A stretch of DNA of 64,000 nucleotides from Macrostomum lignano (Eukaryota): the NCBI GenBank assembly GCA_002269645.1, contig NIVC01001008.1, positions 310,001-374,000 on the forward strand, written 5' to 3'. Under the pieces are notes generated by a model. The model saw nothing but the letters and a program-made list of their open reading frames with translations, was not told the origin of the DNA and ran no database searches. The translations under genes and the position numbers were made by a program. Of the stretch, positions 23,359-61,212 are shown piece by piece. Within the stretch, counting starts at the first letter, position 1, and every line of letters starts with the position of its first letter.

Positions 23359-23624
23359 AGATGGTGGAGTTTCTTTTTTGACGCTACTTCCTGTTTACCA
23401 ACCTCACCGTCTGTTCTACTTTTCCTGTTATTTAATAAGTTTCCATGCATTTTCCTTCAGGTTTCTACAAGTTAAGCTAGTTCGTTCTTAAGCTATCTGC
23501 CTTTAACTTTTGTTTTTTTCGTCTTCCGTGTCTAAGAAAAAATAAACTGTTTTGGCATTTTGTGTGTGTTTTTTTATTAACAGTTCTTTTTTTGCGTTTG
23601 TGTATTTCACAGTCGTCTAAACTG

Positions 23625-24205
23625 GAGTGAATGGGGTGAAGGCCAGCTGCACCCAGTGAGTGAATAGGGTGAAGGCCAGCTGCACCCAGTGAGTGAATGG
23701 GGTGAGGGCCAGCTGCACCCAGTGAGTGAATGGGGTGAGGGCCAGCTGCACCCAGTGAGTGAATGGGGTGAGGGCAGCTGCACCTAGTGAGTGAATGGGG
23801 TGAAGGCCAGCTGCACCCAGTGAGTGAATGGGGTGAGGGCCAGCTGCACCCAGTGAGTGAATGGGGTGAAGGCCAGCTGCACCCTGTGAGTGAATGGGGT
23901 GAGGGCCAGCTGCACCCAGTGAGTGAATGGGGTGAGGGCCAGCTGCACCCAGTGAGTGAATGGGGTGAGGGCCAGCAGGACCCAGTGAGTGAATGGGGTG
24001 AGGGCCAGCTGCACCAAGTGAGTGAATAGGGTGAGGCCAGCTGCACCCAGTGAGTGAATGGGGTGAAGGCTAGCTGCACCCAGTGAGTGAATAGGGTGAG
24101 GGTAGCTGCACCCAGTGAGTGAATAGGGTGAAGGCCAGTTGCACCCAGTGAGTGAATGGGATGAGGGCAGCTGCACCCAGTGAGTGAATAGGGTGAGGCC
24201 AGCAG
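23625..24205. repeat. 33-bp minisatellite, ~17 copies, each with a CA|GTGAGT donor-like motif
   Basis: Unit gtgagtgaatggggtgagggccagctgcaccca. Confidence 0.97.
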
Positions 24206-24272
24206 GACCCAATACAGCAGTGCAAACAGTTTTCGATGAAGGTTGCAAAACAGTGCAAATAGTTTTCGATGA

Positions 24273-24686
<414 letters not shown>

Positions 24687-25162
24687 GAGGCTTTGGCGAA
24701 TGCAGGATTTTTTAGCCCTTAAAAAGACTACTGGCAGTAGCAAGTGTTCTCCGGCTAGGAGTTAAGCTGTTTTTAGACCCTAAGAAACTTGTTTGTTGCT
24801 TTTCAGATTCATTAAAGCAGAGACGCCCACCTGAACAGAACCTAATAGTAACTTAATAGAATTTTCATCAATAATTTAAGTCCCAATAAGTAAACAAACC
24901 CGTATTCCTTTTAGATCATTTATTATCATTTTAACTATAACTTAGATGCCACCCCAGTAGTGTGAAGCGATTGTGTAACAGAGTTATTTGCCATTGTTTA
25001 AGCTATAGCAAATATATATGAAACATTTACACTGCAAGACCACGATCTAACTGTGTGCGTGTGTGGAATTATGTTTTGACTTTGTCATTTACTTCCTTAC
25101 ACCTTGTATTGACATATTTCATTGTTAGCTGTGGGATTATATTTTGTGAGAATCATCCGTGA

Positions 25163-25905
25163 GAATAAATCCCCTCAGGAATCGGCCATCAGAATAAATC
25201 CCCTCAGAAATCGGCCATCAGAATAAATCCCCTCAGGAATCGAGCATCAGAATAAATCCCCTCAGAAATCGAGCATCAGAATAAATCCCCTCAGGAATCG
25301 AGCATCAGAATAAATCCCCTCAGGAATCGGCCATCAGAATGAATCCCCTCAGGAATCGAGCATCAGAATAAATCCCCTCAGGAATCGGCCATCAGAATGA
25401 ATCCCCTCAGGAATCGGCCATCAGAATGAATCCCCTCAGGAATCGGCCATCAGAATGAATCCCCTCAGGAATCGGCCATCAGAATGAATCCCCTCAGGAA
25501 TCGGCCATCAGAATGAATCCCCTCAGGAATCGACCATCAGAATGAATCCCCTCAGGAATCCACCATCAGAATAAATCCCCTCAGGAATCGGCCATCAGAA
25601 TAAATCCCCTCAGGAATCGGCCATCAGAATAAATCCCCTCAGGAATCGGCCATCAGAATGAATCCCCTCAGGAATCGGCCATCAGAATAAATCCCCTCAG
25701 GAATCGGTCATCAGAATAAATCCCCTCAGGAATCGGCCATCAGAATAAATCCCCTCAGGAATCGGCCATCAGAATAAATCCCCTCAGGAATCTACCATCA
25801 GAATAAATCCCCTCAGGAATCGGCCATCAGAATAAATCCCCTCAGGAATCGGCCATCAGAATAAATCCCCTCAGGAATCTACCATCAGAATAAATCCCCT
25901 CAGGA
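25163..25905. repeat. 29-bp minisatellite between the ATP-c copies, ~25 copies
   Basis: Unit aaatcccctcaggaatcggccatcagaat. Confidence 0.98.
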
Positions 25906-25947
25906 AAAGTCGTTATGCAATTGCTCCTGCACAAGGAGGGAGTTTAG

Positions 25948-26355
<408 letters not shown>

Positions 26356-27183
26356 GAGGCTTTGGCGAATGGTCATTTATTAGCTTCGGTTGCCGATGTA
26401 GTAGCTCTACACAAGTTGGGTTTCAATAAACAGTACCGGTAGGACGTGTTGTTCGACTATGCAGCCTCTAGAATACGAGTATGGAAGCCCAGCTGTAGTT
26501 TAAGGTTCCATTCTAACCAACTATTTAACTAGACTTTAAAATTTAGTGTTCACATTTCTAGCCGTATGAAATTTAATTAAAATACTATAGTTTCTAATGC
26601 CAATCGCTTGAAAGGCTATTTTTCAATTGCTTTAAATGATCAGTAGATATTTAATAGCGCTAACTGACAAACTAAAACTAGACGTTTTTTTCAAAGTCTT
26701 CGCCCTTGTGCTAATTTAATTGCAAATGAAATAAAAATAAACTGTTTATGGTTTACTGATAATATTGATAATTAATAACTGATAATTAATCTAAGAAAAA
26801 AATATGACCTAATACTTTTTATCATTTTAATTATACTGGGGTACAACTCGTAAATCAATTGTGATGATCTGCTTCATGTGCTTCGGCAAATACTTCTACC
26901 TGCCGCAACGAAAAAATTCTGTTTTGATGAAGAATAGCCTCTTATGAAGAGCCTCTTAACAGAAATCAGGATAAAAGGTTCAAAAATAGTTCGGCGCTGA
27001 AATTGTGTTAGTCTATGGTGTCTGAGCGAAACGTAATCGCAAAAAGTATGCATCTTTCGCGCTTATCGTCTTAAGTTTAAAATACATTTTTAATTGACGA
27101 TCATTGTACATAGCTACTCATAATTTTTGTGTAAAGGTGTTTGTGAAGTCTAATTAGCTCGTAGCTAGTTAGTTGGAGTTATA

Positions 27184-28377
27184 ATGGCTGCTGATTCCGA
27201 CCAAACAGAGACGCAAACTTCGGCTATCGGTAATGCATCTGAAGTGGCTTTGCACACTGATGATCCCCTGACAACCATTAGCAGTGAGCAGTCACCGTCG
27301 GTCTGCTTAACAATGGATCAACTGTCTGGCAATGCCTCCAATGCCTACAATGCTGCTACCTCGATTGATGGAGATCGGGCCTGTCCAGATTCCGCTGCCG
27401 CTACCTCTGCTAGAGCGATTGAGTCAACCCTGCTTGCCCCCAATGCTGAAGTAGATGACGAGGTAATTCAGATCGTCATGCTTCCGTGTAGAGCTTTTAT
27501 GGAGAAAATAACAGCCTTTGAGTTAACATTTGAGTTTAGCTCTTCAGATTAATGATCTAAGACACCTTATCAGAGGCTTATCTACATCACTTTATCCCAG
27601 CATCGTAACCCTCAGAACCTGGATGCAGTGCCTTCGATGCCATTAAAATATTCTCAATCTCACTTTCATCACCCTAATCATCCTAAATGACCTCAAGCTG
27701 TCCGAATCTCCGTGACCCGCTGCATCACACCAATGACACATTTGAAATCGGATCTCCACGATATGAAGTTCCATGAACCAGGTAGCCTAGAGTCAACAGG
27801 TTGCACTATTTGTACACACGCTTGTACTCATTATTCAACCACCCAGAAGCCTGACGAGACTCCAGTCTGTCGGATCTGCCTGGACGGCGCCTCATCCGGA
27901 CCGCTGCGCCGCCTCTGCGCCTGCCAGGGCACCGTGGGGAGCCTCCACCGGCACTGCCTGACCCGCTGGCTCGGCCTGTCAAAGAAGCAGCACTGCGAGC
28001 TGTGCCTGCAGCCGCTGCCGGTGGTGATCGACCAGCCGGGCCTGGTACAGTACATCCGGAACGCCCCTAAACGCTGCCACTGTGTGGCTTTGCTAGACTT
28101 GGTCAGCCTCCTTCTGATGCTGCCGCTCATTGTGTACTGCAATCTGCTCTCCGTGTCCGCTTTGCAACACTTCAGAGAGCTGCGCTACCTTCGCCTGCGG
28201 CAGTACTCCTTCTGGGAGATTTGCTTTGGCATTGTGCTGACCCCTTTCCTGCTGTCCGGCTTCCTGCTCTGGATCTGGTTCGTGTGCCGCGGCCACCGTT
28301 CTGAGTACAGGCGCTGGCGTCTGGAGCATCGGCGGGTGACGCTGTGCGAGTCCGAGTCCTCCCTAGCTGAGCAGTGA
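27184..28377 (+). CDS. MARCH-family RING-CH (RINGv) membrane E3 ligase, 2 exons, ~269 aa
   Basis: Exons 27184-27462 (gag|gtaatt) and 27847-28377 (cccag|aag), phase 0. CRICLDG...CACQGTVGSLHRHCLTRW...CELC C4HC3 motif followed by two hydrophobic helices. Confidence 0.88.
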
Positions 28378-29564
28378 GCGCACCTCACTTAAAATCTCGG
28401 AATGCGATGTACTCATCATACTACTGACTGAAAAGTATAGTGCGCGCGGGTTTACAATAGTTTAGTGAATTTAATGAAAAGGAATCGCATCCAGCGCTTA
28501 TTAGACTACTGATGAATAGTACTAATATGCGCCAACCAGGCTGAGAGAACAACGAAAAAAATGAATATAAAAAGTAGAGATTTGTCGCCAGTGAAAAAAA
28601 TCGAGGACTTACGACAAAGCGAGGTTTATAAAGTGCTAAGTTGTTCACTTTTCAGCTATAAATAATTTCCATACAATTTCTGATTCTATTTTATTTTTCT
28701 TTCATATATGGATATACTACTCATTAGCTATTACTCGCCCAATTTCCAGCTTGGTCAAATGAACTGTAATTTTTGGACCGAATATAAATGCCTACTGAGA
28801 GTAGTGCTCTGGCACTCTCAAACATAGATAATTATATAAACTAACTGAAACCGCGAAAGTCGCGCAGAAATTAAACTGACTGCTCAAGCAGAAAAAAAAC
28901 TCGCTATACGACCGTAGTTTTCAGTTCTCAGAAGTCTTCTGCCAATTTGTGTTATGAACAATTTAAACATGCCTGTCTGGACTTTTTATATCTGTCATGG
29001 ATTCTTTTAGATACTGCGAAGGTTTTCGAAGGTTTGCTTACCTTCTGGCCCCTCAGCCCCTCCTGTCCCTTCTGTTTGATCCATTTTCTTTCGCACAGTT
29101 CGAGGAAAGTGCATAACGGGTTTGCATATATACTGAGAACATGAATTATGTTTATTGATCACAATGTGTATTGTGCCTTATCTGTCAATGATAGGCGTCC
29201 CTTTACTATTGATCTATAGAATTTCTACTGCTGAATAGAACAGGGAGTTTTCAATTCAAAACAAAAACAACTGTTCAAAACCGTTTTTCCGGCATGCCAA
29301 TAAATGCACGCATAAATATGAAATCTATAACTGTGTATACTTACAAAATATTATATAGAAGTTAGTGAGTGTGCTCTCTGCTGGGACTCGTAAAAATAGC
29401 AAATATTATTTGAGGCGCCAGGTTGGGAACAATTATGAAAATGCTCAGAGAGTGCCCAGTTTCTTGCCTTCTGTAAGCTATTTAACTGACAAGATTCAGT
29501 TCTTTGTTCTAAATGTATACACTGTAAAAGTACGTAGACTCGTGGTATGTTCGTGCTGAGATAA

Positions 29565-31505
29565 TGAGAAAGATAAGGAGGAGGGTGGCAGGGGTGGATT
29601 GAGGTGAAGAGACAGATAAGGAGGAGGGTGGCAGAGGGGGATTGAGGTGAAGAGACAGATAAGGAGGAGGGTGGCAGAGGGGATTGAGGTGAAGAGACAG
29701 ATAAGGAGGAGGGTGGCAGAGGGGGATTGAGGTGAAGAGACAGATAAGGAGGAGGGTGGCAGAGGGGGATTGAGGTGAAGAGACAGATAAGGAGGAGGGT
29801 GGCAGAGGGGATTGAGGTGAAGAGACAGATAAGGAGGAGGGTGGCAGAGGGGGATTGAGGTGAAGAGACAGATAAGGAGGAGGGTGGCAGAGGGGATTGA
29901 GGTGAAGAGACAGATAAGGAGGAGGGTGGCAGTGGATTGAGGTGAAGAGACAGATAAGGAGGAGGGTGGCAGAGGGGGATTGAGGTGAAGAGACAGATAA
30001 GGAGGAGGGTGGCAGAGGGGGATTGAGGTGAAGAGACAGATAAGGAGGAGGGTGGCAGAGGGGGATTGAGGTGAAGAGACAGATAAGGAGGAGGGTGGCA
30101 GAGGGGATTGAGGTGAAGAGACAGATAAGGAGGAGGGTGGCAGTGGATTGAGGTGAAGAGACAGATAAGGAGGAGGGTACGTGGCAGAGGGGGATTGAGG
30201 TGAAGAGACAGATAAGGAGGAGGGTGGCAGTGGATTGAGGTGAAGAGACAGATAAGGAGGAGGGTGGCAGAGGGGGATTGAGGTGAAGAGACAGATAAGG
30301 AGGAGGGTGGCAGAGGGGGATTGAGGTGAAGAGACAGATAAGGAGGAGGGTGGCAGAGGGGGATTGAGGTGAAGAGACAGATAAGGAGGAGGGTGGCAGT
30401 GGATTGAGGTGAAGAGACAGATAAGGAGGAGGGTGGCAGAGGGGGATTGAGGTGAAGAGACAGATAAGGAGGAGGGTGGCAGAGGGGGATTGAGGTGAAG
30501 AGACAGATAAGGAGGAGGGTGGCAGAGGGGGATTGAGGTGAAGAGACAGATAAGGAGGAGGGTGGCAGAGGGGGATTGAGGTGAAGAGACAGATAAGGAG
30601 GAGGGTGGCAGAGGGGGATTGAGGTGAAGAGACAGATAAGGAGGAGGGTGGCAGAGGGGGATTGAGGTGAAGAGACAGATAAGGAGGAGGGTGGCAGTGG
30701 ATTGAGGTGAAGAGACAGATAAGGAGGAGGGTACGTGGCAGAGGGGGATTGAGGTGAAGAGACAGATAAGGAGGAGGGTGGCAGTGGATTGAGGTGAAGA
30801 GACAGATAAGGAGGAGGGTGGCAGAGGGGGATTGAGGTGAAGAGACAGATAAGGAGGAGGGTACGTGGCAGAGGGGGATTGAGGTGAAGAGACAGATAAG
30901 GAGGAGGGTGGCAGAGGGGGATTGAGGTGAAGAGACAGATAAGGAGGAGGGTACGTGGCAGAGGGGGATTGAGGTGAAAAGACAGATAAGGAGGAGGGTG
31001 GCAGAGGGAGATTGAGGTGAAGAGACAGATAAGGAGGAGGGTGGCAGTGGATTGAGGTGAAGAGACAGATAAGGAGGAGGGTGGCAGAGGGGGATTGAGG
31101 TGAAGAGACAGATAAGGAGGAGGGTGGCAGAGGGGGATTGAGGTGAAGAGACAGATAAGGAGGAGGGTGGCAGTGGGGGATTGAGGTGAAGAGACAGATA
31201 AGGAGGAGGGTGGCAGTGGGGGATTGAGGTGAAGAGACAGATAAGGAGGAGGGTACGTGGCAGAGGGGGATTGAGGTGAAGAGACAGATAAGGAGGAGGG
31301 TGGCAGTGGATTGAGGTGAAGAGACAGATAAGGAGGAGGGTGGCAGAGGGGGATTGAGGTGAAGAGACAGATAAGGAGGAGGGTGGCAGAGGGGGATTGA
31401 GGTGAAGAGACAGATAAGGAGGAGGGTGGCAGAGGGGGATTGAGGTGAAGAGACAGATAAGGAGGAGGGTGGCAGAGGGGGATTGAGGTGAAGAGACAGA
31501 TAAGT
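29565..31505. repeat. 43-bp purine/G-rich minisatellite, ~45 copies
   Basis: Unit gagacagataaggaggagggtggcagagggggattgaggtgaa. Confidence 0.98.
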
Positions 31506-31656
31506 AGGGAGGCAGAGGACAGTCTAAATGAAGGAAATAACTGGTAACAGATGAGGTGCTGGGGTCGAGCTAAGCACGTCTGCATCATTGCTTATAAATG
31601 TTAAATAGTTGATTAGACTGAACCTCGATAGAGGACTACTTAAAAACGCCCTATAT

Positions 31657-34600
31657 TCACACGGAACTTCGTCTGTCTCTCCCTCCTCCAAGCTGCTCCG
31701 TTTGTGACGCGCTGTCTCTGCATGCCGGGCTGGTCTGAAGGCTTGCGTCCGCCAGTGGCGCCGCAGCGGCGACCGCAGGCGCTTCTGCTGAGGCTTTGAC
31801 GTTTGTGCTGAGTATTGTCTCCAGACTGGCTGCGGCTGCCGTTTGGAGAGTGGAGGAGTGGAGAGACTATTTGTTATAATCTGCTGATAGCCGCCTCCCA
31901 ACTACTCAGGGCTCTGATGGACCGCCACTGCCTGTCCTCCCAGGGCTCTGATTGGCCCACCACTGACTCTCCTATCAGGGCTCTGATTGACCCGCCACTG
32001 GCTCTCCTATCAGGGCTCTGATTGACCCGCCACTGGCTCTCCTATCAGGGCTCTGATTGGCCCACCACTGACTCTCCTTTCAGGGCTCTGATTGACCCGC
32101 CACTGGCTCTCCTATCAGGGCTCTGATTGACCCGCCACTGGCTCTCCTATCAGGGCTCTGATTGACCCGCCACTGGCTCTCCTATCAGGGCTCTGTTGAC
32201 CCGCCACTGCCCTGTCCTCTCGGGGCTCTTTTTGGACCGCCACTGCCTGTCCTCTCGGGGCTCTGATTGGCCCACCACTGCCTGTCCTCTCAGAGCTCTG
32301 ATTGGCCCTGCCACTGACTCTCCTTTCAGGGCTCTGATTGGCCCCGCCACTGCCTCTCCTCTCAGGGTTCTGATTGGACCCCAACTCCTATTATTCGACA
32401 AAGCGACGCTCACCTCTACACTGGCCGCAGGCTCCAGCGCTCTCTGAATTCTTCACACTACTGCCACCACCACCGCCACCACCGCCGCTGATGGCCAGGC
32501 TGACCAGAGGCAGCACGGCGGAGTTTCTCTGTGCCGCCATCATGCCTTTCAGGTCCAGCTTCCTGCTGCCGCTGCCGGCGCTCGAGCTGCTCTTGTTGTA
32601 GGCCCGTCTGGTTGAGGAGGAAGTCGATGCTAGACTGTGCACCGTGGACAGCGGCTGCTGCTGGCCTGACAGTCTGGAGAACTGCATCTTGGAGCTAGTT
32701 GAGTCCATCCTGATGGCGAATTCGTTGCCGTAGATGCTCACCCTTCGTTTGCTGGTCAGCCTGCGGTGGTTTATCTTGCCGTTTGGGGTCGAGGATGCGC
32801 CTCCGCCGGAGCCGTCCGCGTCATCGGCGGTGGCGCCTGCGGATCTTTCGTCAGCGCCTTCAGTGACGGCGGACGGTCCAGCAGTGGACTCTGCAATAGG
32901 GTCATCCGTGGTCCGATGGCCGTACACCTGCTTGTTGAACTCTTCTCCGTTGAACATGCTTTTGTTGATAGCCACTAGGGCTGTTAGGCGCTGAAGTGTT
33001 GCATGATTGGGCTGTGTTTATAACAGCTGCTAATTGGATAGTTAGTGCGTCTATGGTCTGCTAATTGGATAATTATTGTGCCTATAGCCTGCCAATTGCA
33101 ATGTTTCACCTGAGAGAAAGATCCTTTGGCGGTGAAGACCAAGTAATAAACAATGCAGACTGGCAGCGGCAGCAGCGGCAGGAACTCCAGCACATAACTG
33201 GCATTTATTGTCCAACTGGGCAGCGGCAGGCCCACCTCGTTCGGCTTTTTAAACCATTTAATTACCAGATTCGCCTGCGGAAAAGTTGATGTGGTCGCGC
33301 ACGAAATTGAATCAAGGCAATAAGTTATAAACCTTTTTGTTAATCTAATCTTGACTAGACGCCTAAATAAGCTGTTTGTTAGGATATACAGGCAAAAGAT
33401 AAGCATGCATCAACTACACTACTGTTAGTAGAAATAGAAGCAAAAATGAGTAAATTTAATTTAACCCAACAAAAGTGTCTGGGAAATTTCTGCTCTCACA
33501 ATCAGAGCAGCCGGTGACAGCACGGTCCAGCAGACTTTCCACCATAGCGACAGATTTCCTCGCAGCATAATCTTGATGATGGCGCTGAACTGCTGCACAC
33601 CGAACACCCAGCTGACGGTTGCCAGCTCCATGAGGCACAGCAGCGCCACCGACCAGGCGATGCCGTAGGCGTCAAGCAGTTCGACCAGGTGAAATCCTGC
33701 CTGCAGTTGTTTGTTGAAAATAGGCGCTCCGTTAATATTTGTGGGAAGGGAATTGCTGCAGCTATACTGTATTGGATTAGCAATTGGTTATGAGTTGATT
33801 AGTGCTGGCTCAAATAAAACTTTATAGTGCTGCTTTATAGGCATTGGGGACACAGCTGAGTATTTGGGTCACAGCTGGGGTTTTGGAGTTACAGCTGGGG
33901 TATTGGGGTCGCAGCTGGGGTATTGGAGTCACAGCTGGGGTATTGGGGTCATAGCTGGGGTATTGTGGTCACAGCTGGGGTATTGGAGTCACAGCTGGGG
34001 TATTGGGGTCGCAGCTGGGGTATTGGAGTCACAGCTGGGGTATTGGAGTCGCAGCTGGGGTATTGGAGTCACAGCTGGGGTATTGGAGTCGCAGCTGGGG
34101 TATTGGGGTCACAGCTGGGGTATTGGGGTCACAGGTAGGGTACTCAGGCTACACCCTGAGGCTAAAGGATATGGGGTGCCGGCAGCCACAACAGAAACGG
34201 CAGCCAGAAGACAGCAGGAACTCAGGCCGGCAGTCCCGCACAGAGGTGCTGAGCGGCAGCTGCAGGCCGGCCATGCCCAGACAGAAGGCCGGCAGCCACC
34301 AGACTCGAAGGCCTTCGCCGCCGACTCGCAGCAGGTCGTGAAAGCTGATTGGCCGGCCGCCGCAGAGACGCAGCGCGCCGGAGGCGGCGGTGAAGGCCAC
34401 GGCGGACAGGCAGTCGGCGCAGATGGCCAGGTTGAGAAAGGTGAGAATTGCCGCTGTCAAGAACAGAATCCCACTCAGCCAGGCCGGCTGCCAGCAGAGC
34501 AGCGCCGAGTAGGCAGCGAATGCGCCTGCGAGAGTCTCTGCAACAGCAGGGGGCAAACGGGGGCAATCGGATGTGGATCGCCATTGCCCAGGCTGTTTAT

Positions 34601-37600
34601 CTCGGGGAGCTCAGAGTTTGCTTATTGAAAAGTTTTTTTTCAAACTGAGGTATTGTTAGTTTTGTTGATTAGTTTGTAAGCTTGTTAATCCGCGTACTTA
34701 GATTTTTTAGTAGCAAAAGTTTAAGATATCTAATCGGGGATGTCTCTCTGATAAATTAGAGATCAGAAAGATCAGAGAGAGAAGAAAGATTATAGAGAGA
34801 TCACAGAGATCACAGAGATCACAGAGATCACAGAGATCACAGAGATCACAGAGATCACAGAGATCACAGAGATCAAAGAGAGCTCAGAGATCACAGAGAT
34901 CACAGAGATCACAGAGATCACAGAGATCACAGAGATCACAGAGATCACAGAGATCAAAGAGAGCTCAGAGATCACAGAGATCACAGAGATCACAGAGATC
35001 ACAGAGATCACAGAGATCAGAGAGATCACAGAGATCACAGAGATCACAGAGATCACAGAGATCACAGAGATCACAGAGATCACAGAGATCACAGAGATCA
35101 CAGAGATCACAGAGATCACAGAGATCACAGAGATCACAGAGATCAAAGAGAGCTCAAAGATCACAGAGATCACAGAGATCAAAGAGAGCTCAGAGATCAC
35201 AAAGATCAGAGAGATCACAAAGATCACAGAGATCACAGAGATCACAGAGATCAAAGAGAGCTCAAAGATCACAGAGATCACAGAGATCAAAGAGAGCTCA
35301 GAGATCAAAGAGAGCTCAGAGATCACAAAGATCAGAGAGATCACAAAGATCACAGAGATCACAGAGATCACAGAGATCAAAGAGAGCTCAAAGATCACAG
35401 AGATCACAGAGATCAAAGAGAGCTCAGAGATCACAAAGATCAGAGAGATCAGACAAGTTTTTATTTTTACAATAAAAGTCTATTAATCAAAGCAGATTTA
35501 GCATTAACAATGCATTAGCAAACACGCTAGCTGCCAAGAGTTACAACTCGTTAGAATTCGTCACTAGTGATAATATTAGGGAATCATGTGTCAATCAAAT
35601 GCCGGGTTCGGTTCTTATCCTCAGCGATTACCGCACTAAACAGTGGCAGAGATGAGAGCGCCAGCACAGCTGAGAACAGCATCATGAGCGGCCACCATCG
35701 GTCCAACAGGGAGCGGAGTCGTTGATGGCAACCGACGCACCTGCCAGACAGCCAGGTGTTGAGAACGTCGGCCAATACCAGAGTGTGCAGACACTCTGAG
35801 GAAAAGCTGAGCAAGGCCAGGATGAAGCTCCAGAGGCTGGTTGCCCAGCGGAAGCCGGGATTGGCTGAGGCGGCGGTGGCCGACATGATGAATACGCTGT
35901 AGCGAAATCCCAGGCCTGTAATTATTAGTGCCCCTGACTATGAACTTTAGCAATCCACTGTCTTGTATAGATTAGCAATCCACTGTCTTGTATAGATTAG
36001 CAATCCACTGTCTTGTATAGATTAGCAATCCACTGTCTTGTATAGATTAGCAATCCACTGTCTTGTATAGATTAGCAATCCACTGTCTTGTATAGATTAG
36101 CAATCCACTGTCTTGTATAGATTAGCAATCCACTGTCTTGTATAGATTAGCAATCCACTGTCTTGTATAGATTAGCAATCCACTGTCTTGTATAGATTAG
36201 CAATCCACTGTCTTGTATAGATTAGCAATCCACTGTCTTGTATAGATTAGCAATCCACTGTCTTGTATAGATTAGCAATCCACTGTCTTGTATAGCTTAG
36301 CAATCCACTGTCTTGTATAGCTTAGCAATCCACTGTCTTGTATAGCTTAGCAATCCACTGTCTTGTATAGATTAGCAATCCACTGTCTTGTATAGCTTAG
36401 CAATCCACTGTCTTGTATAGATTAGCAATCCACTGTCTTGTATAGCTTAGCAATCCACTGTCTTGTATAGATTAGCAATCCACTGTCTTGTATAGATTAG
36501 CAATCCACTGTCTTGTATAGATTAGCAATCCACTGTCTTGTATAGATTAGCAATCCACTGTCTTCTCGGTGCATAGATTAACAATCCTCTTTATCCTCAA
36601 TACATAGATTAGCAATTCACTATTGAATATGAGTACATAACTAGCACTCTAGTGCCCCCCCCTTCGGGACGGCCAATAAGCAAGGAGCAAAATTATTTAT
36701 ACAAATCCATTAGAAAAGCACATTTTCTTAAGAACCAATTATTGCAAAATTTCAATACTTCTTCAGTGATACATCACCTTCCTTACTCGTATTCGAGTAA
36801 AAATGTCACGGACAAAGATGTTTTCTATGAATCTTTTTTTTTCCACAAGTAACAAAAGGACAACAAAATAAAGCCTTAGCAAGCATCCCCCAGTCAGCAA
36901 GAACCCCCACCCCCAGACAGCAAGCGCCCCCCAGACAGCAAGCGCCCCCAGACAGCAAGCATCCCCCCAGACAGCAAGCATCCCCCCAGACAGCAAGCGC
37001 CCCCCAGACAGCAAGCATCCCCCCAGACAGCAAGCGCCCCCCAGACAGCAAGCGCCCCCAGACAGCAAGCGCCCCCAGACAGCAAGCATCCCCCCAGACA
37101 GCAAGCATCCCCCCAGACAGCAAGCGCCCCCCAGACAGCAAGCATCCCCCCAGACAGCAAGCGCCCCCCAGACAGCAAGCGCCCCCAGACAGCAAGCGCC
37201 CCCCCAACCAGCAAGCGCCCCCAGACAGCAAGCATCCCCCCAGACAGCAAGCATCCCCCCAGACAGCAAGCGCCCCCCAGACAGCAAGCGCCCCCCAGAC
37301 AGCAAGCATCCCTGGATAGAAAGAATCCCTGGATAGAAAGAATCCCTAGTTAGTACGGTTTTTGGGGCTAGTAGAAGTTTAATCTATATTTTGAGCTTCA
37401 CCAATTACCAAATAGGCTACTATTATAAGTAGCAATTGTGAAACCGAAGCCTGAGAACACTCACTGTCGTCAAACAGGCTGGAAATTTCCAGCGAGCTGT
37501 CGGTGGACATGATGATGCCGGCGAACGAAAACAGGATGAAGCCGCAAAAGAAGCTGACGAGGAAGTCAATAATTGCCACGGACACTGCGGTTCTGCGAGG

Positions 37601-40600
37601 AGGGTTGGGATCAGGTAAATTAGCTCGCCCAGAGCGCTTTATAATCGGGATAGGGGGATTTTCTGCAGATAGAATCGGGATAGGGAAATTTTTAAGAGAG
37701 AATCGGGATAGGGGGATTTTCTGTAGACAGAATCGGGATTTGGGGAATTTTTTAAGAGAGAATCGGGATAGGGGAATTTTCTGCAGATAGAATCGGGATA
37801 GGGGAATTTTCTGCAGATAGAATCGGGATAGGGGACTTTTCTGCAGAGAGAATCGAGATAGGGGAATTTTCTGAAGATAGAATCGGGATTAGGGGATTTT
37901 CTGTAGACAGAATCGGGATTTGGGGAATTTTTTAAGAGAGAATCGGGATAGGGGAATTTTCTGCAGAGAGAGTCGAGATAGGGGAATTTTCTGCAGATAG
38001 AATCGGGATAGGGGACTTTTCTGCAGAGAGAGTCCAGATATGGGAATTTTCTGAAGATAGAATCGGAATAGGGGTATTTCTGCATAGAAAGTCGGGATAG
38101 GGGAATTTTCTGCAGATAGAATTGGGATAGGGGAATTTCTGCATAAAAAGTCGGGATAGGGGAATTTTCTGTAGAGAGAATCGAGATAGGGGAATTTTCT
38201 GAAGATACAATCGGGATAGGTGAATTTTCTGCAGATAGAATTGGGATAGGGGAATTTTCTGTAGACAGAATTGGGATTAGGGGAATTTTTTAGGAGAGAA
38301 TCGGGATAGGGGAATTTTGCTGCAGTGAGAATCACGAATTTTTTGCAGAGAGAATCGGGATAGGGGAATTTTATTAAGAGAGAATCGGGATTGGGGAATT
38401 TTCTGCAGAGAGTCGGGTTAGGGGAATTTTCTGTAGACAGAATCGGGATAGGGGAATTTACTGCAGACAGAATCGGGATAGGGGAATTTTCTGCAGAGAG
38501 AATCGAAATAGGGTAATTTTCTGTAGACAGAATTGGGATTAGGGGAATTTTTTAAGAGAGAATCGGGATAGGGGAATTTTCTACAGAAAGAATCAGGATA
38601 GGGGAATTTTCTGCAGACAGAATTGGCATTAGGGGAATTTTTTGAGAGAATCGGGATAGGGGAATTTTCTGCAGATAGAATCGGGATAGGGGAATTTTTT
38701 GAGAGAATCGGGATAGGGGAATTTTCTGCAGATAGAATCGGGATAGGGGAATTTTCTGAAGACAGAATTGGGATTAGGGGAATTTTTTGAGAGAATCGGG
38801 ATAGGGGAATTTTCTGCAGATTGAATCGGGATAGGGGAATTTTTTGAGAGAATCGGGATAGGGGAATTTTCTGAAGATAGAATCGGGATTAGGGGATTTT
38901 CTGTAGACAGAATCGGGATTTGGGGAATTTTTTAAGAGAGAATCGGGATAGGGGAATTTTCTGCAGAGAGAGTCGAGATAGGGGAATTTTCTGCAGATAG
39001 AATCGGGATAGGGGACTTTTCTGCAGAGAGAGTCCAGATATGGGAATTTTCTGAAGATAGAATCGGAATAGGGGTATTTCTGCATAGAAAGTCGGGATAG
39101 GGGAATTTTCTGCAGATAGAATTGGGATAGGGGAATTTCTGCATAGAAAGTCGGGATAGGGGAATTTTCTGTAGAGAGAATCGAGATAGGGGAATTTTCT
39201 GAAGATACAATCGGGATAGGTGAATTTTCTGCAGATAGAATTGGGATAGGGGAATTTTCTGTAGACAGAATTGGGATTAGGGGAATTTTTTAGGAGAGAA
39301 TCGGGATAGGGGAATTTTGCTGCAGTGAGAATCACGAATTTTTTGCAGAGAGAATCGGGATAGGGGAATTTTATTAAGAGAGAATCGGGATTGGGGAATT
39401 TTCTGCAGAGAGTCGGGTTAGGGGAATTTTCTGTAGACAGAATCGGGATAGGGGAATTTACTGCAGACAGAATCGGGATAGGGGAATTTTCTGCAGAGAG
39501 AATCGAAATAGGGTAATTTTCTGTAGACAGAATTGGGATTAGGGGAATTTTTTAAGAGAGAATCGGGATAGGGGAATTTTCTACAGAAAGAATCAGGATA
39601 GGGGAATTTTCTGCAGACAGAATTGGCATTAGGGGAATTTTTTGAGAGAATCGGGATAGGGGAATTTTCTGCAGATAGAATCGGGATAGGGGAATTTTTT
39701 GAGAGAATCGGGATAGGGGAATTTTCTGCAGATAGAATCGGGATAGGGGAATTTTCTGAAGACAGAATTGGGATTAGGGGAATTTTTTGAGAGAATCGGG
39801 ATAGGGGAATTTTCTGCAGATTGAATCGGGATAGGGGAATTTTTTGAGAGAATCGGGATAGGGGAATTTTCTGAAGATAGAATCGGGATTAGGGGATTTT
39901 CTGTAGACAGAATCGGGATTTGGGGAATTTTTTAAGAGAGAATCGGGATAGGGGAATTTTCTGCAGAGAGAGTCGAGATAGGGGAATTTTCTGCAGATAG
40001 AATCGGGATAGGGGACTTTTCTGCAGAGAGAGTCCAGATATGGGAATTTTCTGAAGATAGAATCGGAATAGGGTATTTCTGCATAGAAAGTCGGGATAGG
40101 GGAATTTTCTGCAGATAGAATTGGGATAGGGGAATTTCTGCATAAAAAGTCGGGATAGGGGAATTTTCTGTAGAGAGAATCGAGATAGGGGAATTTTCTG
40201 AAAATACAATCGGGATAGGTGAATTTTCTGCAGATAGAATTGGGATAGGGGAATTTTCTGTAGACAGAATTGGGATTAGGGGAATTTTTTAGGAGAGAAT
40301 CGGGATAGGGGAATTTTGCTGCAGTGAGAATCACGAATTTTTTGCAGAGAGAATCGGGATAGGGGAATTTTATTAAGAGAGAATCGGGATTGGGGAATTT
40401 TCTGCAGAGAGTCGGGTTAGGGGAATTTTCTGTAGACAGAATCGGGATAGGGGAATTTACTGCAGACAGAATCGGGATAGGGGAATTTTCTGCAGAGAGA
40501 ATCGAAATAGGGTAATTTTCTGTAGACAGAATTGGGATTAGGGGAATTTTTTAAGAGAGAATCGGGATAGGGGAATTTTCTACAGAAAGAATCAGGATAG

Positions 40601-43600
40601 GGGAATTTTCTGCAGACAGAATTGGCATTAGGGGAATTTTTTGAGAGAATCGGGATAGGGGAATTTTCTGCAGATAGAATCGGGATAGGGGAATTTTTTG
40701 AGAGAATCGGGATAGGGGAATTTTCTGCAGATTGAATCGGGATAGGGGAATTTTTTGAGAGAATCAAGATAGGGGAATTTTCTGCAGATAGAATCGGGAT
40801 AGGGGAATTTTCTGAAGACAGAATCGGTATAGGGGAATTTTCTGCAGATAGAATCGGGATAGGGGAATTTTTTGAGAGAATCGGGATAAGGGAATTTTCT
40901 GCAGATAGAATCGGGATAGGGGAATTTTTTGAGAGAATCGGGATAGGGGAATTTTCTGCAGATAGAATCGAGATAGGGCAATTTTCTGAAGATAGAATCG
41001 GGATTAGGGGATTTTCTGTAGACAGAATCGGGATTTGGGGAATTTTTTAAGAGAGAATCGGGATAGGGGAAGTTTCTGCAGAGAGAGTCGAGATAGGGGA
41101 ATTTTCTGCAGATAGAATCGGGATAGGGGACTTTTCTGCAGAGAGAGTCCAGATAGGGGAATCTTCTGAAGATAGAATCGGAATAGGGGTATTTTCTGCA
41201 GATAGAATCGGGATAGGGAAATTTCTGCATAGAAAGTCGAGATAGGGGAATTTTCTGCAGATAGAATCGGGATAGGGAAATTTCTGCATAGAAAGTCGGG
41301 ATAGGGGAATTTTCTGCAGATAGAATTGGGATAGGTGAATTTCTGCATAGAAAGTCGGGATAGGGGAATTTTCTGTAGAGAGAATCGAGATAGGGGAATT
41401 TTCTGAAGATACAATCGGGATAGGGGAATTTTCTGCAGATAGAATTGGGATAGGGGAATTTTCTGTAGACAGAATTGGGATTAGGGGAATTTTTTAGGAG
41501 AGAATCGGGATAGGGGAATTTTGCTGCAGTGAGAATCACGAATTTTTTGCAGAGAGAATCGGGATAGGGGAATTTTATTAAGAGAGAATCGGGATTGGGG
41601 AATTTTCTGCAGAGAGTCGGGTTAGGGGAATTTTCTGTAGACAGAATCGGGATAGGGGAATTTACTGCAGACAGAATCGGGATAGGGGAATTTTCTGCAG
41701 AGAGAATCGAAATAGGGTAATTTTCTGTAGACAAAATTGGGATTAGGGGAATTTTTTAAGAGAGAATCGGGATAGGGGAATTTTCTACAGAAAGAATCAG
41801 GATAGGGGAATTTTCTGCAGACAGAATTGGGATTAGGGGAATTTTTTGAGAGAATCGGGATAGGGGAATTTTCTGCAGATAGAATCGGGATAGGGGAATT
41901 TTCTGAAGACAGAATCAGGATAGGGGAATTAGAGAGAACTACGCTATGAGAAATGTTTCTAGCAAGGAATTTGTTAGGGAGATTTTCTATATATGCGAGC
42001 TAGATTACGATTGGGGAATTCTCCGAATCAAAAAACCCTAGTCATGAATTCTCACTTCTTGCAGCCGGTGTGAAACCGGTTGTAACTGGACAAATTGATC
42101 AGGCATCCGAACCCGATGCCCAGGTTGTAGAACACCTGCACGAGAGCTTCGTACCAAGCCTGCGGCTCTGTGAGGATGTCCCAGTTGGGCCGGATAAACA
42201 TGCGAATGCCGGTCAGTGAGCGCGAGTCCCGCACAGCCAGGATGAACAAGATGACGATGAGCAGCAGGCCCAGGACTAGGCACACGCTGAGTATCTGCGC
42301 GACGATGGGGCGGAACGGGGGCGGTAGGGGGCGCTTAGGATTCTGTAAGGGAGAGAGAGAGTATTTGATACTGATTGGAGTGGCGCAGAGGAAGATAGAT
42401 AGAGATGGATAGAGATGGGCAGAGCTTGATATAGATGGGCAGAGACGGATATAGATGAATAGAGGTGGATAGAGATGGACGGAGCTGGATAGAGATGGGC
42501 AGAAATGGATAGAGATGGATAGAGATGGATAGAGATGGGCAGAGACGGATAGAGATGGACAGAGATTGATAGAGATGGATAGAGATGGATAGAGATGGAT
42601 AGAGATGGATAGAGATGGATAGAGATGGGCAGAGACGGATAGAGATGAATAGAGATGGATAGAGATGGATAGAGATGGATAGAGATGAATAGAGATGAAC
42701 AGAGATGGACAGAGATGGATAGAGATGGACAGAGATGGATAGAGATGGGCAGAGACGGATATAGATGAATAGAGATGGATAGAGATGGATAGAGATGGAT
42801 AGAGATGGGCAGAGACGGATAGAGATGAATAGAGATGGATAGAGATGGATAGAGATAGATAGAGATGGATAGAGATGGGCAGAGATGGATAGAGATGAAT
42901 AGAGATGGATAGAGATGGACAGAGATGGATAGAGATGGACAGAGATGGATAGAGATGGATAGAGATAGATAAAGATGGGTAGAGATGAATAGAGATGGAT
43001 AGAGATGGATAGAGATGAATAGAGATGGATAGAGATGGATAGAGATGGATAGAGATGGATAGAGATGGATAGAGATAGATAGAGATGGATAGAGATGGGC
43101 AGAGACGTATAGAGATGAATAGAGATGGATAGAGATGGACAGAGATGGATAGAGATGGACAGAGATGGATAGAGATGGACAGAGATGGATAGAGATGGAT
43201 AGAGATAGATAAAGATGGGTAGAGATGAATAGAGATGGATAGAGATGGATAGAGATGAACAGAGATGGATAGAGATAGATAAAGATGGGTAGAGATGAAT
43301 AGAGATGGATAGAGATGGATAGAGATGAACAGAGATGGATAGAGATAGATAAAGATGGGTAAAGATAAAGATGGAATAAAGACGGGATAAAGATAAAGAT
43401 GGAAAGAGATAGATAGAGATGAATAGAGATGGGCAGAGATGAATAGAGATGGGTAGAGATGATTAGAGATGGGTAGAGATGAATAGAGATGGGTAGAGAT
43501 GAATAGAGATGGGTAGAGATGATTAGAGATGGGTAGAGATGATTAGAGATGGGTAGAGATGATTAGAGATGGGTAGAGATGATTAGAGATGGGTAGAGAT

Positions 43601-44199
43601 GAATAGAGATGATTGGTAAAGATCGATAGAAATCGGAAAGATACGGATTCAGGCGAATTAATATCGGAGGAAAATGGCGAGCAATGGTGATGTGGGAAAG
43701 GGAGGTAGAAAGGGAGAATTGAAGAGCAGTTCAATTTTGAGTCGCTCAGCAACTCATTAATGTTTTTAATTAGCTGTTGGTGCGCTTGTAAGTAGTGCTT
43801 TTATTATAAAAAATCGGTGACTTGAACGCTAAAAATTGGTTAGAGAACAAGTTGTTGTTCATAAGAAGATCTGGTTCCATGAAGTTTACAATAAATATTG
43901 CTGTTATCAAGAGTTAGCTCTGGTATAGCAAGTGGCGCAGGTTAGTTTTTAATCGTAACGGTTTAGCCAAAACCATTAGCCAAAAATATTATACAATTTT
44001 TCATCCAAGCATTGGTTTACCATCATTGTGGCTAAGTTTATTGGCCGTTCAAATGTCTGAAAACAATGTTTTGGACTTATTAATTGAAGGTTCAGAAGTG
44101 ATACACAGGTAAGGATTCATTGACTGATCGGCTGATTGGTTTACTGTTTGATTGATATATTGATTGATGGTGGATGGCTTGATTGATTGACTGATTGAC

Positions 44200-44263
<64 letters not shown>

Positions 44264-44272
44264 AGATAGATA

Positions 44273-44308
<36 letters not shown>

Positions 44309-44398
44309 TATTGATTTATTGACTGATCGGCTGATTGGCTGATTGGTTTACTGTTTGATTGATATATTGATTGATGGTGGATGGCTTGATTGATTGAC

Positions 44399-44467
<69 letters not shown>

Positions 44468-45740
44468 TCTTGATTTCTTGATTGATTGACTGATTTATTG
44501 ATTGACTGATTGACTGATTGACTGATTGATTGACTGATTAACTGATTGATTGATTGATGGATTTCTTGACTGATTAACTGATTGATTGATTGATGGATTT
44601 CTTGATTGATTGACTGATTGATTGATTGACTGATTGATTGATGGCTGATTGATTGATTGATTGAATGATTGTTTGATAGTTTCATAGGCCATAGAAGATA
44701 TAGCTACCTTTCCAGAATTTCGAATGCCCCTGCACAGAGACACCGCAATGAGCAGCCACATGAGCAGGCAGCAGCCCCACAGCTGCCAGTTGATGCTGTT
44801 AAATTCGCCCGAGTTGTCCGGGGAGAGGCCGAGCACACCGAATCTGACAGGTGACAAGATTGACGGCTTTGTGCTCATGCTATCGGTCTGTGGATAGTAG
44901 ATTACATTGTCACACCTGCTCCATCAGCATCAGGGGATATTTATCAACCAGTGTCACACCTGAGCAGTTCTGCTCCATCAGCATCAGGGGATATTTATCA
45001 ACCAGTGTCACACCTGAGCAGTTCTGCTCCATCAGCATCAGGGGATATTTATCAACCAGTGTCGCACCTGAGCAGTTCTGCTCCATCAGCATCAGGGGAT
45101 ATTTATCAACCAGTGTCACACCTGAGCAGTTCTGCTCCATCAGCATCAGGGGATATTTATCAACCAGTGTCGCACCTGAGCAGTTCTGCTCCATCAGCAT
45201 CATGGCAATCAGGATCAATAATCAGCAGCAATAAAACTAATTGACGTCACACCTGAAATATTCCCTACTGGCCACGATAAAATTAACAGCCGTGAAGTTG
45301 GTGACGCTCAATACAGCGGAAGTGCCATTCAAATCGGTGCCATTTTCTGACCAGCTTTCATTGTAGACGCTGAAGCTGCAGTCTAAAATAGAAGGAGAAA
45401 TTAGTAGGGAATAAATCAACGTGTCTCTGGCAACGGGAGGCCGAACATTTGCTATCTGTCCTTGTTAGGTTGGTGAACACTTTCCGGGATTTAGATCCCA
45501 GCTGCTCAATCCGCCAGATTGCTTTCGTCAGGCGATTCGTGACCGGCCAACACCCTGAGACGTCTCTCAGATTCGAGTTCAGAATTTTGAAACAGCTGCT
45601 GCCATGCAATCTCGAGTGGCATTTCAGCTGACCGTTTCATCTCACGTGCCAGCTGCTTCCCAGTTCCGCCTGCCTCCCCTGCCTTCTTTGAGCTCTCCGC
45701 TCGTTCCTAGATCTCTCGGATCTCTCTGATCTCCCTGATC

Positions 45741-45837
<97 letters not shown>

Positions 45838-47453
45838 CTCTCTGATCTCTCTGATCTCTCTGATCTCTCTGATCTCTCTGATCTCCCTGATCTCCCTGAT
45901 CTCCCTGATCTCCCTGATCTCTCTGATCTCTCTGATCTATCTGATCTCCCTGATCTCCCTGATCTCCTGATCTCTCTGATCTCTCTGATCTATCTGATCT
46001 CCCTGATCTCCCTGATCTCCCTGATCTCCCTGATCTCTCTGATCTATCTGATCTATCTGATCTCCCTGATCTCCCTGATCTCCCTGATCTCTCTGATCTC
46101 TCTGATCTATCTGATCTCCCTGATCTCCCTGATCTCCCTGATCTCCCTGATCTCTCTGATCTATCTGATCTATCTGATCTCCCTGATCTCCCTGATCTCC
46201 CTGATCTCTCTGATCTCCCTGATCTCCCTGATCTCTCTGATCTCTCTGATCTCTCTGATCTCTCTGATCTCTCTGATCTCTCTGATCTCTCTGATCTCTC
46301 TGATCTCTCTGATCTCTCTGATCTCTCTGATCTCTCTGATCTCTCTGATCTCTCGTCTGCTCCGTGTCTTGTCTCGTCCTGTAGTCTCTCCCGCACTCAC
46401 TGGCGCTGTTGAAGCTGTGTTCGCAGTTGGCCCAGGGCAGGTTGGGCGCCAAAGAGGCAAAGAAATAGTACAGGCACAGCGCACCCATGGCGCTGTAGTA
46501 CACGGCCAGGTAGAGCAGAATAATGAAGGACGCAATGCCGATGCCCCGGCTAATGGGCACAATTTTCCACACTCTGTAGAAGCCTTCGCGAAAGTATTGG
46601 CCTAGTATGAGCTCCAAAAAGTAGATCGGTATGCCGCAGATGATCATCATGATGAGGTAGGGGGCGAAGAATGCACCTGGAATGAGTGGGAATTTGAGCG
46701 AGTACTATAGATCCCACCGACATGGAGGTGACTTTGATCCCACCAAGATCCCACCAAAAGTTAGTGTAGTGTATGTAGGCTTGCTTATCCGGAAGTGAAG
46801 TACGCTGATACACGTATCATTGACCCTCCTATCGAAAGTAGCTTAGATCCCACCTACCGGAAGTGACTTAGATCCCACCTACCGGAAGTGGCTTAGCTCC
46901 TACGTACCGGAAGTGGCTTAGATCCTACCTACCGGAAGTGGCTTAGCTCCTACCTACCGGAAGTGGCTTAGCTCCTACCTACCGGAAGTGGCTTAGCTCC
47001 TACCTACCGGAAGTGGCTTAGCTCCTACCTACCGGAAGTGGTTTAGCTCCTACCTACCGGAAGTGGCTTAGCTCCTACCTACCGGAAGTGGCTTAGCTCC
47101 TACCTACCGGAAGTGGCTTAGCTCCTACCTACCGGAAGTGGCTTAGCTCCTACGTACCGGAAGTGGCTTAGATCCTACCTACTGGAAATGGCCTAGATCC
47201 CCTCCACCTACAGGAAATGGCATAAATATCAAATGTCACCTGTAAGCAAATCAAACTCATGCTACTCTACAAACACACCCATATTCCTCAGGAAATCGCT
47301 CTCACCTCCGCCGTACTTGAAGCAGAGAACGGGGAATCGCCACACGTTGCCCATGCCGATTGTAAAGGCCATGCAGGAGACGAAGAAATCGTACTTTCCC
47401 CTCCAGGCGTGCCAGTAGTGATCGGCGTCTTCGTCGCTCTCGTGGGATCGCGT
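31657..47453 (-). CDS. SLC6 (sodium:neurotransmitter symporter family) transporter B, divergent; no in-frame ATG found
   Basis: Exons 47453-47306, 46676-46401, 45382-45253, 44843-44708, 42294-42056, 37592-37465, 35915-35632 (alternative 34525-34242), 33700-33500, 33274-33110, 32990-32414, 31835-31657; phases are consistent. Motifs [54 protein letters not shown]. The last exon is less certain; read-through would stop at 32391. Confidence 0.88.
31915..32370. repeat. 35-bp minisatellite in the last SLC6-B intron
   Basis: Unit cagggctctgattgacccgccactggctctcctat. Confidence 0.95.
33845..34135. repeat. 20-bp minisatellite
   Basis: Unit cacagctggggtattggagt. Confidence 0.96.
34242..34525 (-). CDS. 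Alternative (duplicated) exon 7b of SLC6-B encoding EL4b-TM8-TM9
   Basis: Open 284-nt exon, ctcgcag|GC (phase 1) to TCT|gtgcgg (phase 0). Same length and phases as exon 7a; aligns to SLC6-A exon 9. Confidence 0.7.
34775..35452. repeat. 9-bp repeat (agagatcac)n between exons 7a and 7b
   Basis: Direct inspection. Confidence 0.97.
35950..36612. repeat. 25-bp minisatellite, ~25 copies
   Basis: Unit gattagcaatccactgtcttgtata. Confidence 0.98.
36885..37310. repeat. 18-19-bp C-rich minisatellite
   Basis: Unit cccccagacagcaagc(gc/atc). Confidence 0.97.
37643..41930. repeat. ~31-bp satellite (4.3 kb) with ~1-kb higher-order repeat, in SLC6-B intron 5
   Basis: Unit gagagaatcgggataggggaattttctgca; marker tgcagtgagaatcacg at 38321, 39321, 40320 and 41525. 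Confidence 0.98.
42400..43610. repeat. 10-bp repeat (agagatggat)n
   Basis: Direct inspection. Confidence 0.97.
44120..44670. repeat. (ATTG)n microsatellite with an internal duplication
   Basis: Direct inspection. Confidence 0.96.
44905..45203. repeat. 54-bp minisatellite, ~5.5 copies
   Basis: Unit ccatcagcatcaggggatatttatcaaccagtgtcacacctgagcagttctgct. Confidence 0.97.
45710..46355. repeat. (TC)n plus 9-bp (gatctctct)n compound repeat
   Basis: Direct inspection. Confidence 0.97.
46845..47190. repeat. 25-bp minisatellite carrying ACCGGAAGTG (ETS consensus), SLC6-B intron 1
   Basis: ACCGGAAGTG at 46856 and every 25 bp to 47156 (13 perfect copies). Confidence 0.97.
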
Positions 47454-47574
47454 CTGACAAGGGAGCGGTTTGGTTGGGTGACACTTTTGGGATGATGAGG
47501 CACAATTATTGGAGATGAGTCACATTCGAATGTGGTGATGAATTACGCTTACATGTATAAAGTACAAGTCATAA

Positions 47575-49722: not shown

Positions 49723-61212
<11,490 letters not shown>

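Follow-up and report, generated by a model that had tools for sequence, protein, structure and literature searches.

A 64,000-nucleotide stretch of contig NIVC01001008.1 of Macrostomum lignano (assembly GCA_002269645.1, positions 310,001 to 374,000 of the forward strand; hereafter the window, in which all coordinates are given) contains two tandem SLC6/NSS transporter genes, both on the minus strand. SLC6-A occupies about 62000-50000, and SLC6-B extends over 47453-32391. SLC6-B is a divergent SLC6/NSS transporter gene that lies tail-to-head behind SLC6-A, its more canonical paralogue. Between its exons 6 and 8, SLC6-B carries two adjacent 284-nt exons, 7a and 7b, which would encode alternative versions of transmembrane helices (TM) 8 and 9. 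Judged from sequence, these probably constitute a mutually exclusive exon pair derived from an old tandem exon duplication, a reading to which we assign a probability of roughly 0.55. The features on which it turns are as follows.

37592-37465, minus strand: exon 6 (TM7), constitutive; strong donor ACA/GTGAGT, exits in phase 1
35915-35632, minus strand: exon 7a, 284 nt, phase 1 to 0; end of extracellular loop 4, TM8, intracellular loop 4 and TM9
34526-35631, minus strand: intron separating 7a from 7b, 1106 nt, largely made up of a 9-bp minisatellite (34796-35451)
34525-34242, minus strand: exon 7b, 284 nt, phase 1 to 0; alternative TM8, intracellular loop 4 and TM9
33700-33500, minus strand: exon 8 (TM10), constitutive; acceptor ctgcag/G, phase 0

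Exon geometry and coding signature

The first-pass annotation of this stretch had proposed the mutually exclusive architecture, and it is borne out by the geometry of the locus: 7a and 7b are adjacent, share length and phases, are both coding-like, and each alone completes the reading frame. Their coordinates, 284-nt lengths, phases and openness were confirmed on the minus strand, and the similar endings that had been described (RWW...LPLFSA in 7a and RVWW...LPLSTS in 7b) are both present. Each exon is 3n+2 in length, bounded by AG and GT, and open in the frame fixed by exon 6. Exons E1 to E6, 7a and E8 to E10 together form an open frame of 784 codons, as do the same exons with 7b in place of 7a. 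Joining 7a to 7b produces a stop 17 codons into 7b, while joining neither produces one 9 codons into E8, so the earlier statement that double skipping shifts the frame is correct. The corresponding statement for double inclusion applies to 7b beginning at 34525 but not to every acceptor, since an AG at 34537-34536, with exon start at 34535, escapes it (discussed below). Because both exons share a 3n+2 length, enter in phase 1 and leave in phase 0, the frame is intact only when exactly one of them is used. No constitutive exon lies between them; 7a and 7b are the only coding-like segments in 37464-33701, the remainder being minisatellite.

Published criteria for predicting mutually exclusive exons are similar length (with a default tolerance of 20 amino acids), conserved splice sites and reading frame, and homology (Pillmann et al. 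2011, PMC3228551). The lengths of 7a and 7b are 284 and 284 nt (296 nt for 7b via an upstream AG), and the two agree in splice-site type and frame and are neighbouring internal exons.

An open frame in itself is not significant here, as 9% of shuffled 7a and 21% of shuffled 7b sequences are also open, and the GC-rich 7b region (7b GC 68%) contains open reading frames (ORFs) in alternative frames as well. The main new evidence is codon usage, which indicates that 7b is translated now or was until recently, in the frame that is read only without 7a. Codon log-odds, for which the remaining nine exons of SLC6-B served as the training set, amount to +32.7 bits for 7a and +50.6 bits for 7b when read in the required frame, but to about -60 in either of the alternative forward frames, and none of 5000 shuffles attains either value. 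Among all 94-codon windows of the 64 kb, ranked in six frames, 7a falls in the top 1.3% and 7b in the top 0.7%. GC content by codon position is.52/.52/.73 in 7a and.64/.56/.83 in 7b, with.50/.46/.73 in the constitutive exons. The signal also respects the exon borders, averaging +0.54 per codon inside 7b versus 0.0 and -0.5 in the open stretches that adjoin it, with a similar pattern for 7a. At the DNA level, no similarity between 7a and 7b is found by BLAST, and their best common match is 12 nt. The retention of ORF, phase, length and codon bias without detectable DNA similarity argues for long-term selection on 7b as a coding sequence.

Two other readings of 7b were rejected. A longer, in-frame version of 371 nt with its donor at 34155 does not fit, because the codon signal ends at 34242 and a UniProt model also uses 34242. 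A poison cassette exon, acting as a switch through nonsense-mediated mRNA decay (NMD), conflicts with the +50.6 bits of 7b, which lie in the frame read only if 7a is skipped; after 7a, 7b is stopped at codon 17.

SLC6-A has a counterpart of this exon, which served as a comparator.

54552-54802, minus strand: homologous exon of SLC6-A, 251 nt, phase 1 to 0, starts with GC, canonical TM8 FFLMLLLLGFSSQ

The boundaries of 7a and 7b coincide with those of this exon and, since its phases are identical, the duplicated unit would be a natural, conserved exon. The common length of 7a and 7b differs from the 251 nt of the SLC6-A exon. In a global alignment the SLC6-A exon matches GlyT2 with z = 25. Further hidden copies, such as might lie in introns of SLC6-A, were sought across the window with 7a, 7b and exon 7 of SLC6-A as tblastn queries, and nothing rose above noise.

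Splice sites and the proposed mode of choice

The acceptor of 7a, ttacag/GCCTGG, is weak and lacks a pyrimidine tract, and its donor is GCG/gtaatc. Exon 7b has the acceptor tcgcag/GCGCAT and a weak donor, TCT/gtgcgg. Both donors are weaker than the nine other donors in the gene model, which are mostly GTGAG (five are GTGAGA or GTGAGT, with a possible GTGAGC near 32415). The region upstream of 7b offers more than one acceptor.

34526-34539, minus strand: three acceptor AGs before 7b, giving exon starts at 34537, 34535 and 34525

The start at 34537 extends 7b by 12 nt to 296 nt, is phase-1 compatible and has a better pyrimidine tract than that at 34525. The start at 34525 is likewise phase-1 compatible, gives the 284-nt exon and is the site used by the UniProt model A0A1I8HVN2. 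A start at 34535 would, in addition, place an ATG donated by a spliced leader in frame with 7b.

Several known means of enforcing exclusive choice were considered. Steric hindrance is ruled out, as the 1106-nt intervening intron is too long, and U2/U12 incompatibility is ruled out, as every site is GT-AG. An inverted-repeat scan of 33400-37700 for docking/selector pairing returned 13 short pairs, none of which pairs with both variants and none of which exceeds the chance expectation for 8-nt seeds. With steric and U2/U12 mechanisms excluded and no docking-type pairing standing out, the frame rule, NMD and splice-site competition remain. The best inverted repeat in the scan joins 37448-37467 to 34131-34150 (16/20 nt, with a perfect core of 8 bp) and is not above regional chance; one arm lies over the exon 6 donor and the other about 100 nt downstream of 7b.

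We propose, on the basis of exon structure, a model in which an old tandem duplication of a 3n+2 exon generated the 7a/7b pair and both copies stayed coding. The frame would be kept only with exactly one of the two in each mRNA, and mRNAs with double inclusion or double skipping, which meet stops within 17 or 9 codons, would be removed by NMD. The choice itself may arise through splice-site competition: in 7a the acceptor is poor and the donor fair, in 7b the acceptor is good but the donor poor. The predicted products are two transporters that are alike except in 95 residues, comprising TM8, which lines the substrate and Na2 sites, and the neighbouring TM9.

There is precedent for such an arrangement. 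In Caenorhabditis elegans, frame and NMD account for 14 of the 19 mutually exclusive clusters with non-3n exons (Kuroyanagi et al. 2014, PMC4165533). One of its genes, F30F8.9, has exons 4a and 4b that are both 83 nt, 3n+2 and NMD-dependent, with 17.9% amino-acid identity (PMC4165533). This pair resembles 7a/7b in its adjacency, equal 3n+2 lengths, shared phases, low identity (17.9% versus about 16%) and frame shift upon double inclusion or skipping. It differs in that single inclusion and NMD dependence were shown by reverse transcription PCR in wild type and smg-2 mutants, whereas 7a and 7b are known from DNA and predicted proteins.

Homology, gene models and rival explanations

Observations on the homology of the two exons, the fit of 7b to the SLC6 family, the protein models that contain either exon and the splice sites of 7b weigh partly for and partly against a functional exon pair. 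The 7a and 7b peptides align with a BLASTP E value of 1.2 and a global z of 1.9, with 56 of 1000 shuffles scoring as well. Without gaps they share 15 of 95 residues, or about 16% (p = 0.023), with a BLOSUM sum at p = 0.033, and position-by-position nucleotide identity is 33% (p = 0.024). The correlation between their hydropathy profiles (r = 0.36) is not significant. These values argue only weakly for homology of 7a and 7b, which is only nominally significant (p about 0.02-0.06) and borderline by the published criteria.

To place the exons within the family, we used a profile of 60 SLC6 proteins and scored each exon in the context of exons 6 and 8, with 300 shuffles. In the hidden Markov model (HMM) comparison, 7a scores 66.1 bits versus 52.4 +/- 3.2 for its shuffles, none of the 300 being as high. 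The fit of 7b is marginal, at 58.5 bits versus 53.5 +/- 2.9, with 15 of 300 shuffles as high, and it is the same for both starts (58.5 bits for 284 nt, 58.6 for 296 nt). When each exon alone is compared by hhalign with the SLC6 exon-7 profile, neither 7a nor 7b gives a signal; both thus depart from canonical SLC6 TM8-TM9 in being unrecognisable as such when scored alone. The homologous SLC6-A exon reaches an hhalign probability of 99.5% with the same profile. Identity to the SLC6 consensus is 22% for 7a and 23% for 7b, and 27-46% for the other membrane exons. High-posterior alignment occurs at the exon ends, where AFAAY of 7b falls on LAFxxYP and the TM9 ends (LPLFSA, LPLSTS) fall on the segment before GG.Y of TM10. 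An HMMER scan of 1.84 billion representatives found A0A1I8HVN2 as the sole 7b-type match, the next being 32% identical and covering only E8-E9. A word-index protein search for orthologues or 7b-like sequences matched two M. lignano models only.

These two UniProt models from M. lignano, A0A1I8F5Z4 and A0A1I8HVN2, match the SLC6-B model and are identical to it over the common exons save for the deviations described here; that each of them uses one of the two exons speaks for the pair. A0A1I8F5Z4 follows the path E6-7a-E8 without 7b, with the E6-to-7a junction ...SSLFDD/S/LGFRY. Wherever it deviates from the window (in E4, E5, 7a, E9 and E10), its sequence corresponds to the same DNA read in a different frame, and these deviations are probably indel errors of an older source assembly; the shortened form of 7a that it carries (…HQRLR-LP-AGFHLV) probably arose in this way too. 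A0A1I8HVN2 begins with AFAAYS, exactly at the codon of 7b that is the first complete one after the 34525 acceptor, and has the 7b-to-E8 junction ...LPLSTS/AGFHLV. Its map runs over 22921-34523 on the minus strand, through 7b, E8-E10, a further exon at about 31817-31662, and then on to 22921. Another 570 residues take it through this further exon and through ORFs that lie antisense to a RING-CH (MARCH-like) ORF on the plus strand, at 27712-28377. Since it extends into ORFs antisense to a neighbouring gene, A0A1I8HVN2 is probably an ab initio, chimeric model rather than one based on cDNA. The window and A0A1I8HVN2 differ at 2 of 408 residues, both within 7b (L to I and A to T), and this distribution (p about 0.04) is a slight hint of weaker constraint on 7b. 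As for splicing, the 7b donor is poor, with T at -1 and C at +4, and the AG at 34537-34536 (start 34535, phase-0 compatible) would permit an in-frame transcript containing both 7a and 7b.

Several of the unfavourable points could be accommodated if 7b were a decaying or rarely used relic of the duplication, with 7a the only productive version and inclusion of 7b amounting to noise. We consider this unlikely. It would account for the marginal fit of 7b to SLC6 TM8-TM9, the weak donor TCT/gtgcgg and the location in 7b of both residue differences from the second M. lignano copy; moreover, an open frame is unremarkable at 68% GC (21% of shuffles being open), and the sole model that uses 7b looks ab initio. 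What it leaves unexplained is that 7b, bounded by splice sites, carries +50.6 bits and a third-position GC content of 0.83 in the required frame, and exceeds 7a in doing so. Length and phase have also been kept without DNA similarity to 7a, and a neutral relic so old would be expected to lack an intact frame, periodicity and splice sites.

Alternatively, 7b may serve as the initial coding exon of an independent, 5'-truncated transcript, initiated by spliced-leader (SL) trans-splicing or from an intronic promoter and encoding only TM8-TM12 and the C-terminal tail. A0A1I8HVN2 does start at 7b, the 7b acceptor region has a strong pyrimidine tract, and Macrostomum genes are often SL trans-spliced, with a leader that probably ends in ATG (PMC10468722). 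Joined at 34535, such a leader would read ATG/ACT CTC GCA GGC GCA TTC, in the coding frame. However, a five-helix fragment of the LeuT fold would have no obvious function, the equal length and phase of 7a would go unexplained, and the model begins with AFAAYS, at the codon after the phase-1 acceptor, and not with Met; we therefore regard a truncated transcript as improbable. The same start at 34535 could instead allow both exons to be included, yielding a duplicated TM8-TM9 hairpin and 14 helices with no alternative splicing, since ttgcagAG/ACT is phase-0 compatible and 7a, a 294-nt form of 7b and E8 would be in frame. This is similarly improbable: A0A1I8F5Z4 joins 7a-region sequence straight to E8, an AG directly after another AG would be an unexpected choice, a second copy of TM8, a core scaffold helix, would be hard to fit, and the phase-1 compatibility and identical length of the exons would be coincidental. 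An assembly or haplotype artefact, in which allelic or homeologous versions of one exon were misplaced in tandem, is suggested by the hidden polyploidy and difficult assemblies of M. lignano (PMC10468722) and by the frameshift-type errors in A0A1I8F5Z4, which derive from an older assembly. Yet 7a and 7b have no DNA similarity and about 16% protein identity while a second copy of the locus is 99-100% identical, and each exon has its own unique flanking sequence and a different minisatellite, which makes an artefact extremely improbable. A mutually exclusive pair thus remains our favoured reading of 7a and 7b.

TM8 module, host gene and repeats

In LeuT, A351, T354 and S355 of TM8 are Na2 ligands, as are L434, D437 and S438 in SERT. 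The first-pass annotation had held that splicing would switch these positions from S-S in 7a to L-N in 7b. The first half is reasonable, as hmmalign sets LSFSS of 7a on LGLDS of the family with a posterior of about 0.8. Exon 7a would thereby resemble canonical SLC6 TM8 in placing small hydroxyl residues, S-S, at the positions of T-S in LeuT, and SLC6-A, which carries GFSSQ at the corresponding position, agrees with it. The second half is not supported, because the posterior for TM8 of 7b is 0.1-0.4 in hmmalign and the Na2 residues vary by aligner: L-N in the ungapped alignment of the annotation, D-C in phmmer against GlyT2 and A-A in hmmalign. The residue-for-residue alignment of 7b with TM8 of SLC6-A that had been claimed is weak; the global z is 2.5, with 23 of 1000 shuffles as good, and BLASTP finds a different stretch (E = 0.034). 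As TM8 of 7b has no reliable alignment, the switch from S-S to L-N is unsupported, and the "two ion-coupling or substrate modes" built upon it are speculation. Which property would differ between the isoforms, whether ion coupling, substrate, kinetics or partner binding, is not inferable from sequence. The stronger proposal, that mutually exclusive splicing exchanges the whole TM8-TM9 module to give carriers differing in ion coupling or substrate handling, as a first case in SLC6, seems to us unlikely.

Mutually exclusive exons encoding membrane helices are a known device, common in channels and transporters, and apparently unreported for SLC6. The variants of exon 4 of SLC12A1 (NKCC2) code for a membrane-spanning segment and are distinguished by their affinity for ions. 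Three such exons are spliced so that each excludes the others (PMC9741552). SLC12A1 is, as SLC6-B would be, a cation-coupled solute carrier whose membrane helix close to the ion pathway is exchanged through alternative homologous exons; unlike SLC6-B, it is an APC-type cation-chloride cotransporter of another fold and family, and its variants are closely similar and functionally characterised, whereas 7a and 7b are extremely diverged. For SLC6, no case of mutually exclusive exons was found in the full-text literature, the C. elegans catalogue or the portion consulted of the supplements to the human catalogue, which amounts to absence of evidence only; the earlier remark that no such switch is known in SLC6 agrees with these sources, as far as they extend.

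If both isoforms are made, SLC6 would be added to the channel and transporter families in which exchanging an exon tunes a membrane helix. The locus would then provide a natural TM8-TM9 chimera on the LeuT fold, with two very different sequences set within the same TM1-7 and TM10-12; as both modules are far from canonical TM8-TM9, it would also show the sequence freedom of a scaffold helix pair. If 7b is unused, it would be an ordinary duplication relic. For annotation, the UniProt models found capture SLC6-B only in part, and one is fused with ORFs antisense to a neighbouring gene. In the polyploid and repeat-rich genome of M. lignano, the locus can serve as a test case for the annotation of alternative exons that have diverged.

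The host gene model was built manually from reading-frame displays. Besides exons 6, 7a, 7b and 8, it comprises the following.

47453-32391, minus strand: SLC6-B gene model
47453-47306, minus strand: E1
46676-46401, minus strand: E2
45382-45253, minus strand: E3
44843-44708, minus strand: E4
42342-42056, minus strand: E5
33274-33110, minus strand: E9
32990-32391, minus strand: E10, or spliced onward at a GTGAGC donor near 32415

The Pfam SNF profile (PF00209, cut-off 27 bits) matches SLC6-B over profile positions 3-521 of 524, with 333.1 bits for the version with 7a, 325.3 for that with 7b and 319.7 with exon 7 deleted; that either exon raises the score is a point in favour of the pair. Exon 8 aligns with high confidence to TM10 of GlyT2 and DAT, and the best identity of SLC6-B to any non-Macrostomum protein found is 32-33%. 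In exon 6, judged by eye, an Asp replaces the family Asn of TM7 (VAIIDFLVS). Given non-canonical sites beyond exon 7, the predicted SLC6-B protein may not be a conventional Na+-coupled carrier.

At the 5' end, the first recognisable exon of SLC6-B has no in-frame ATG, and no ATG exon is evident upstream to 50500. The 47453-47519 region (minus strand) offers an acceptor, cttgtcag/ACG, in phase 0, at which a spliced leader ending in ATG would supply a start codon. The start of exon 5 (42342-42290, minus strand) contains a proline-rich insertion of 16 residues after SGK, unless an internal AG is used.

Every SLC6-B intron examined (32000-48000) contains a long minisatellite of its own. One has a 30-bp unit repeated 146 times over 4.3 kb (37643-41930), with a higher-order period of roughly 1 kb. 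Others include those with units of 20 bp (42393-43611), 25 bp (35947-36564) and 9 bp (34796-35451 and 45710-46354). Many of these intron minisatellites yield long spurious ORFs and high codon-score artefacts. Between the 3' end of SLC6-B and the next gene lies a 745-codon ORF (29351-31588, minus strand) that consists entirely of a proline-, serine- and leucine-rich repeat (…LLLICLFTSIPLCHPPPYLSLHLNPPLPPSSLSVSSPQSPSAT…), within a region whose GC skew is extreme (0.62); rather than a gene, this is probably a minisatellite.

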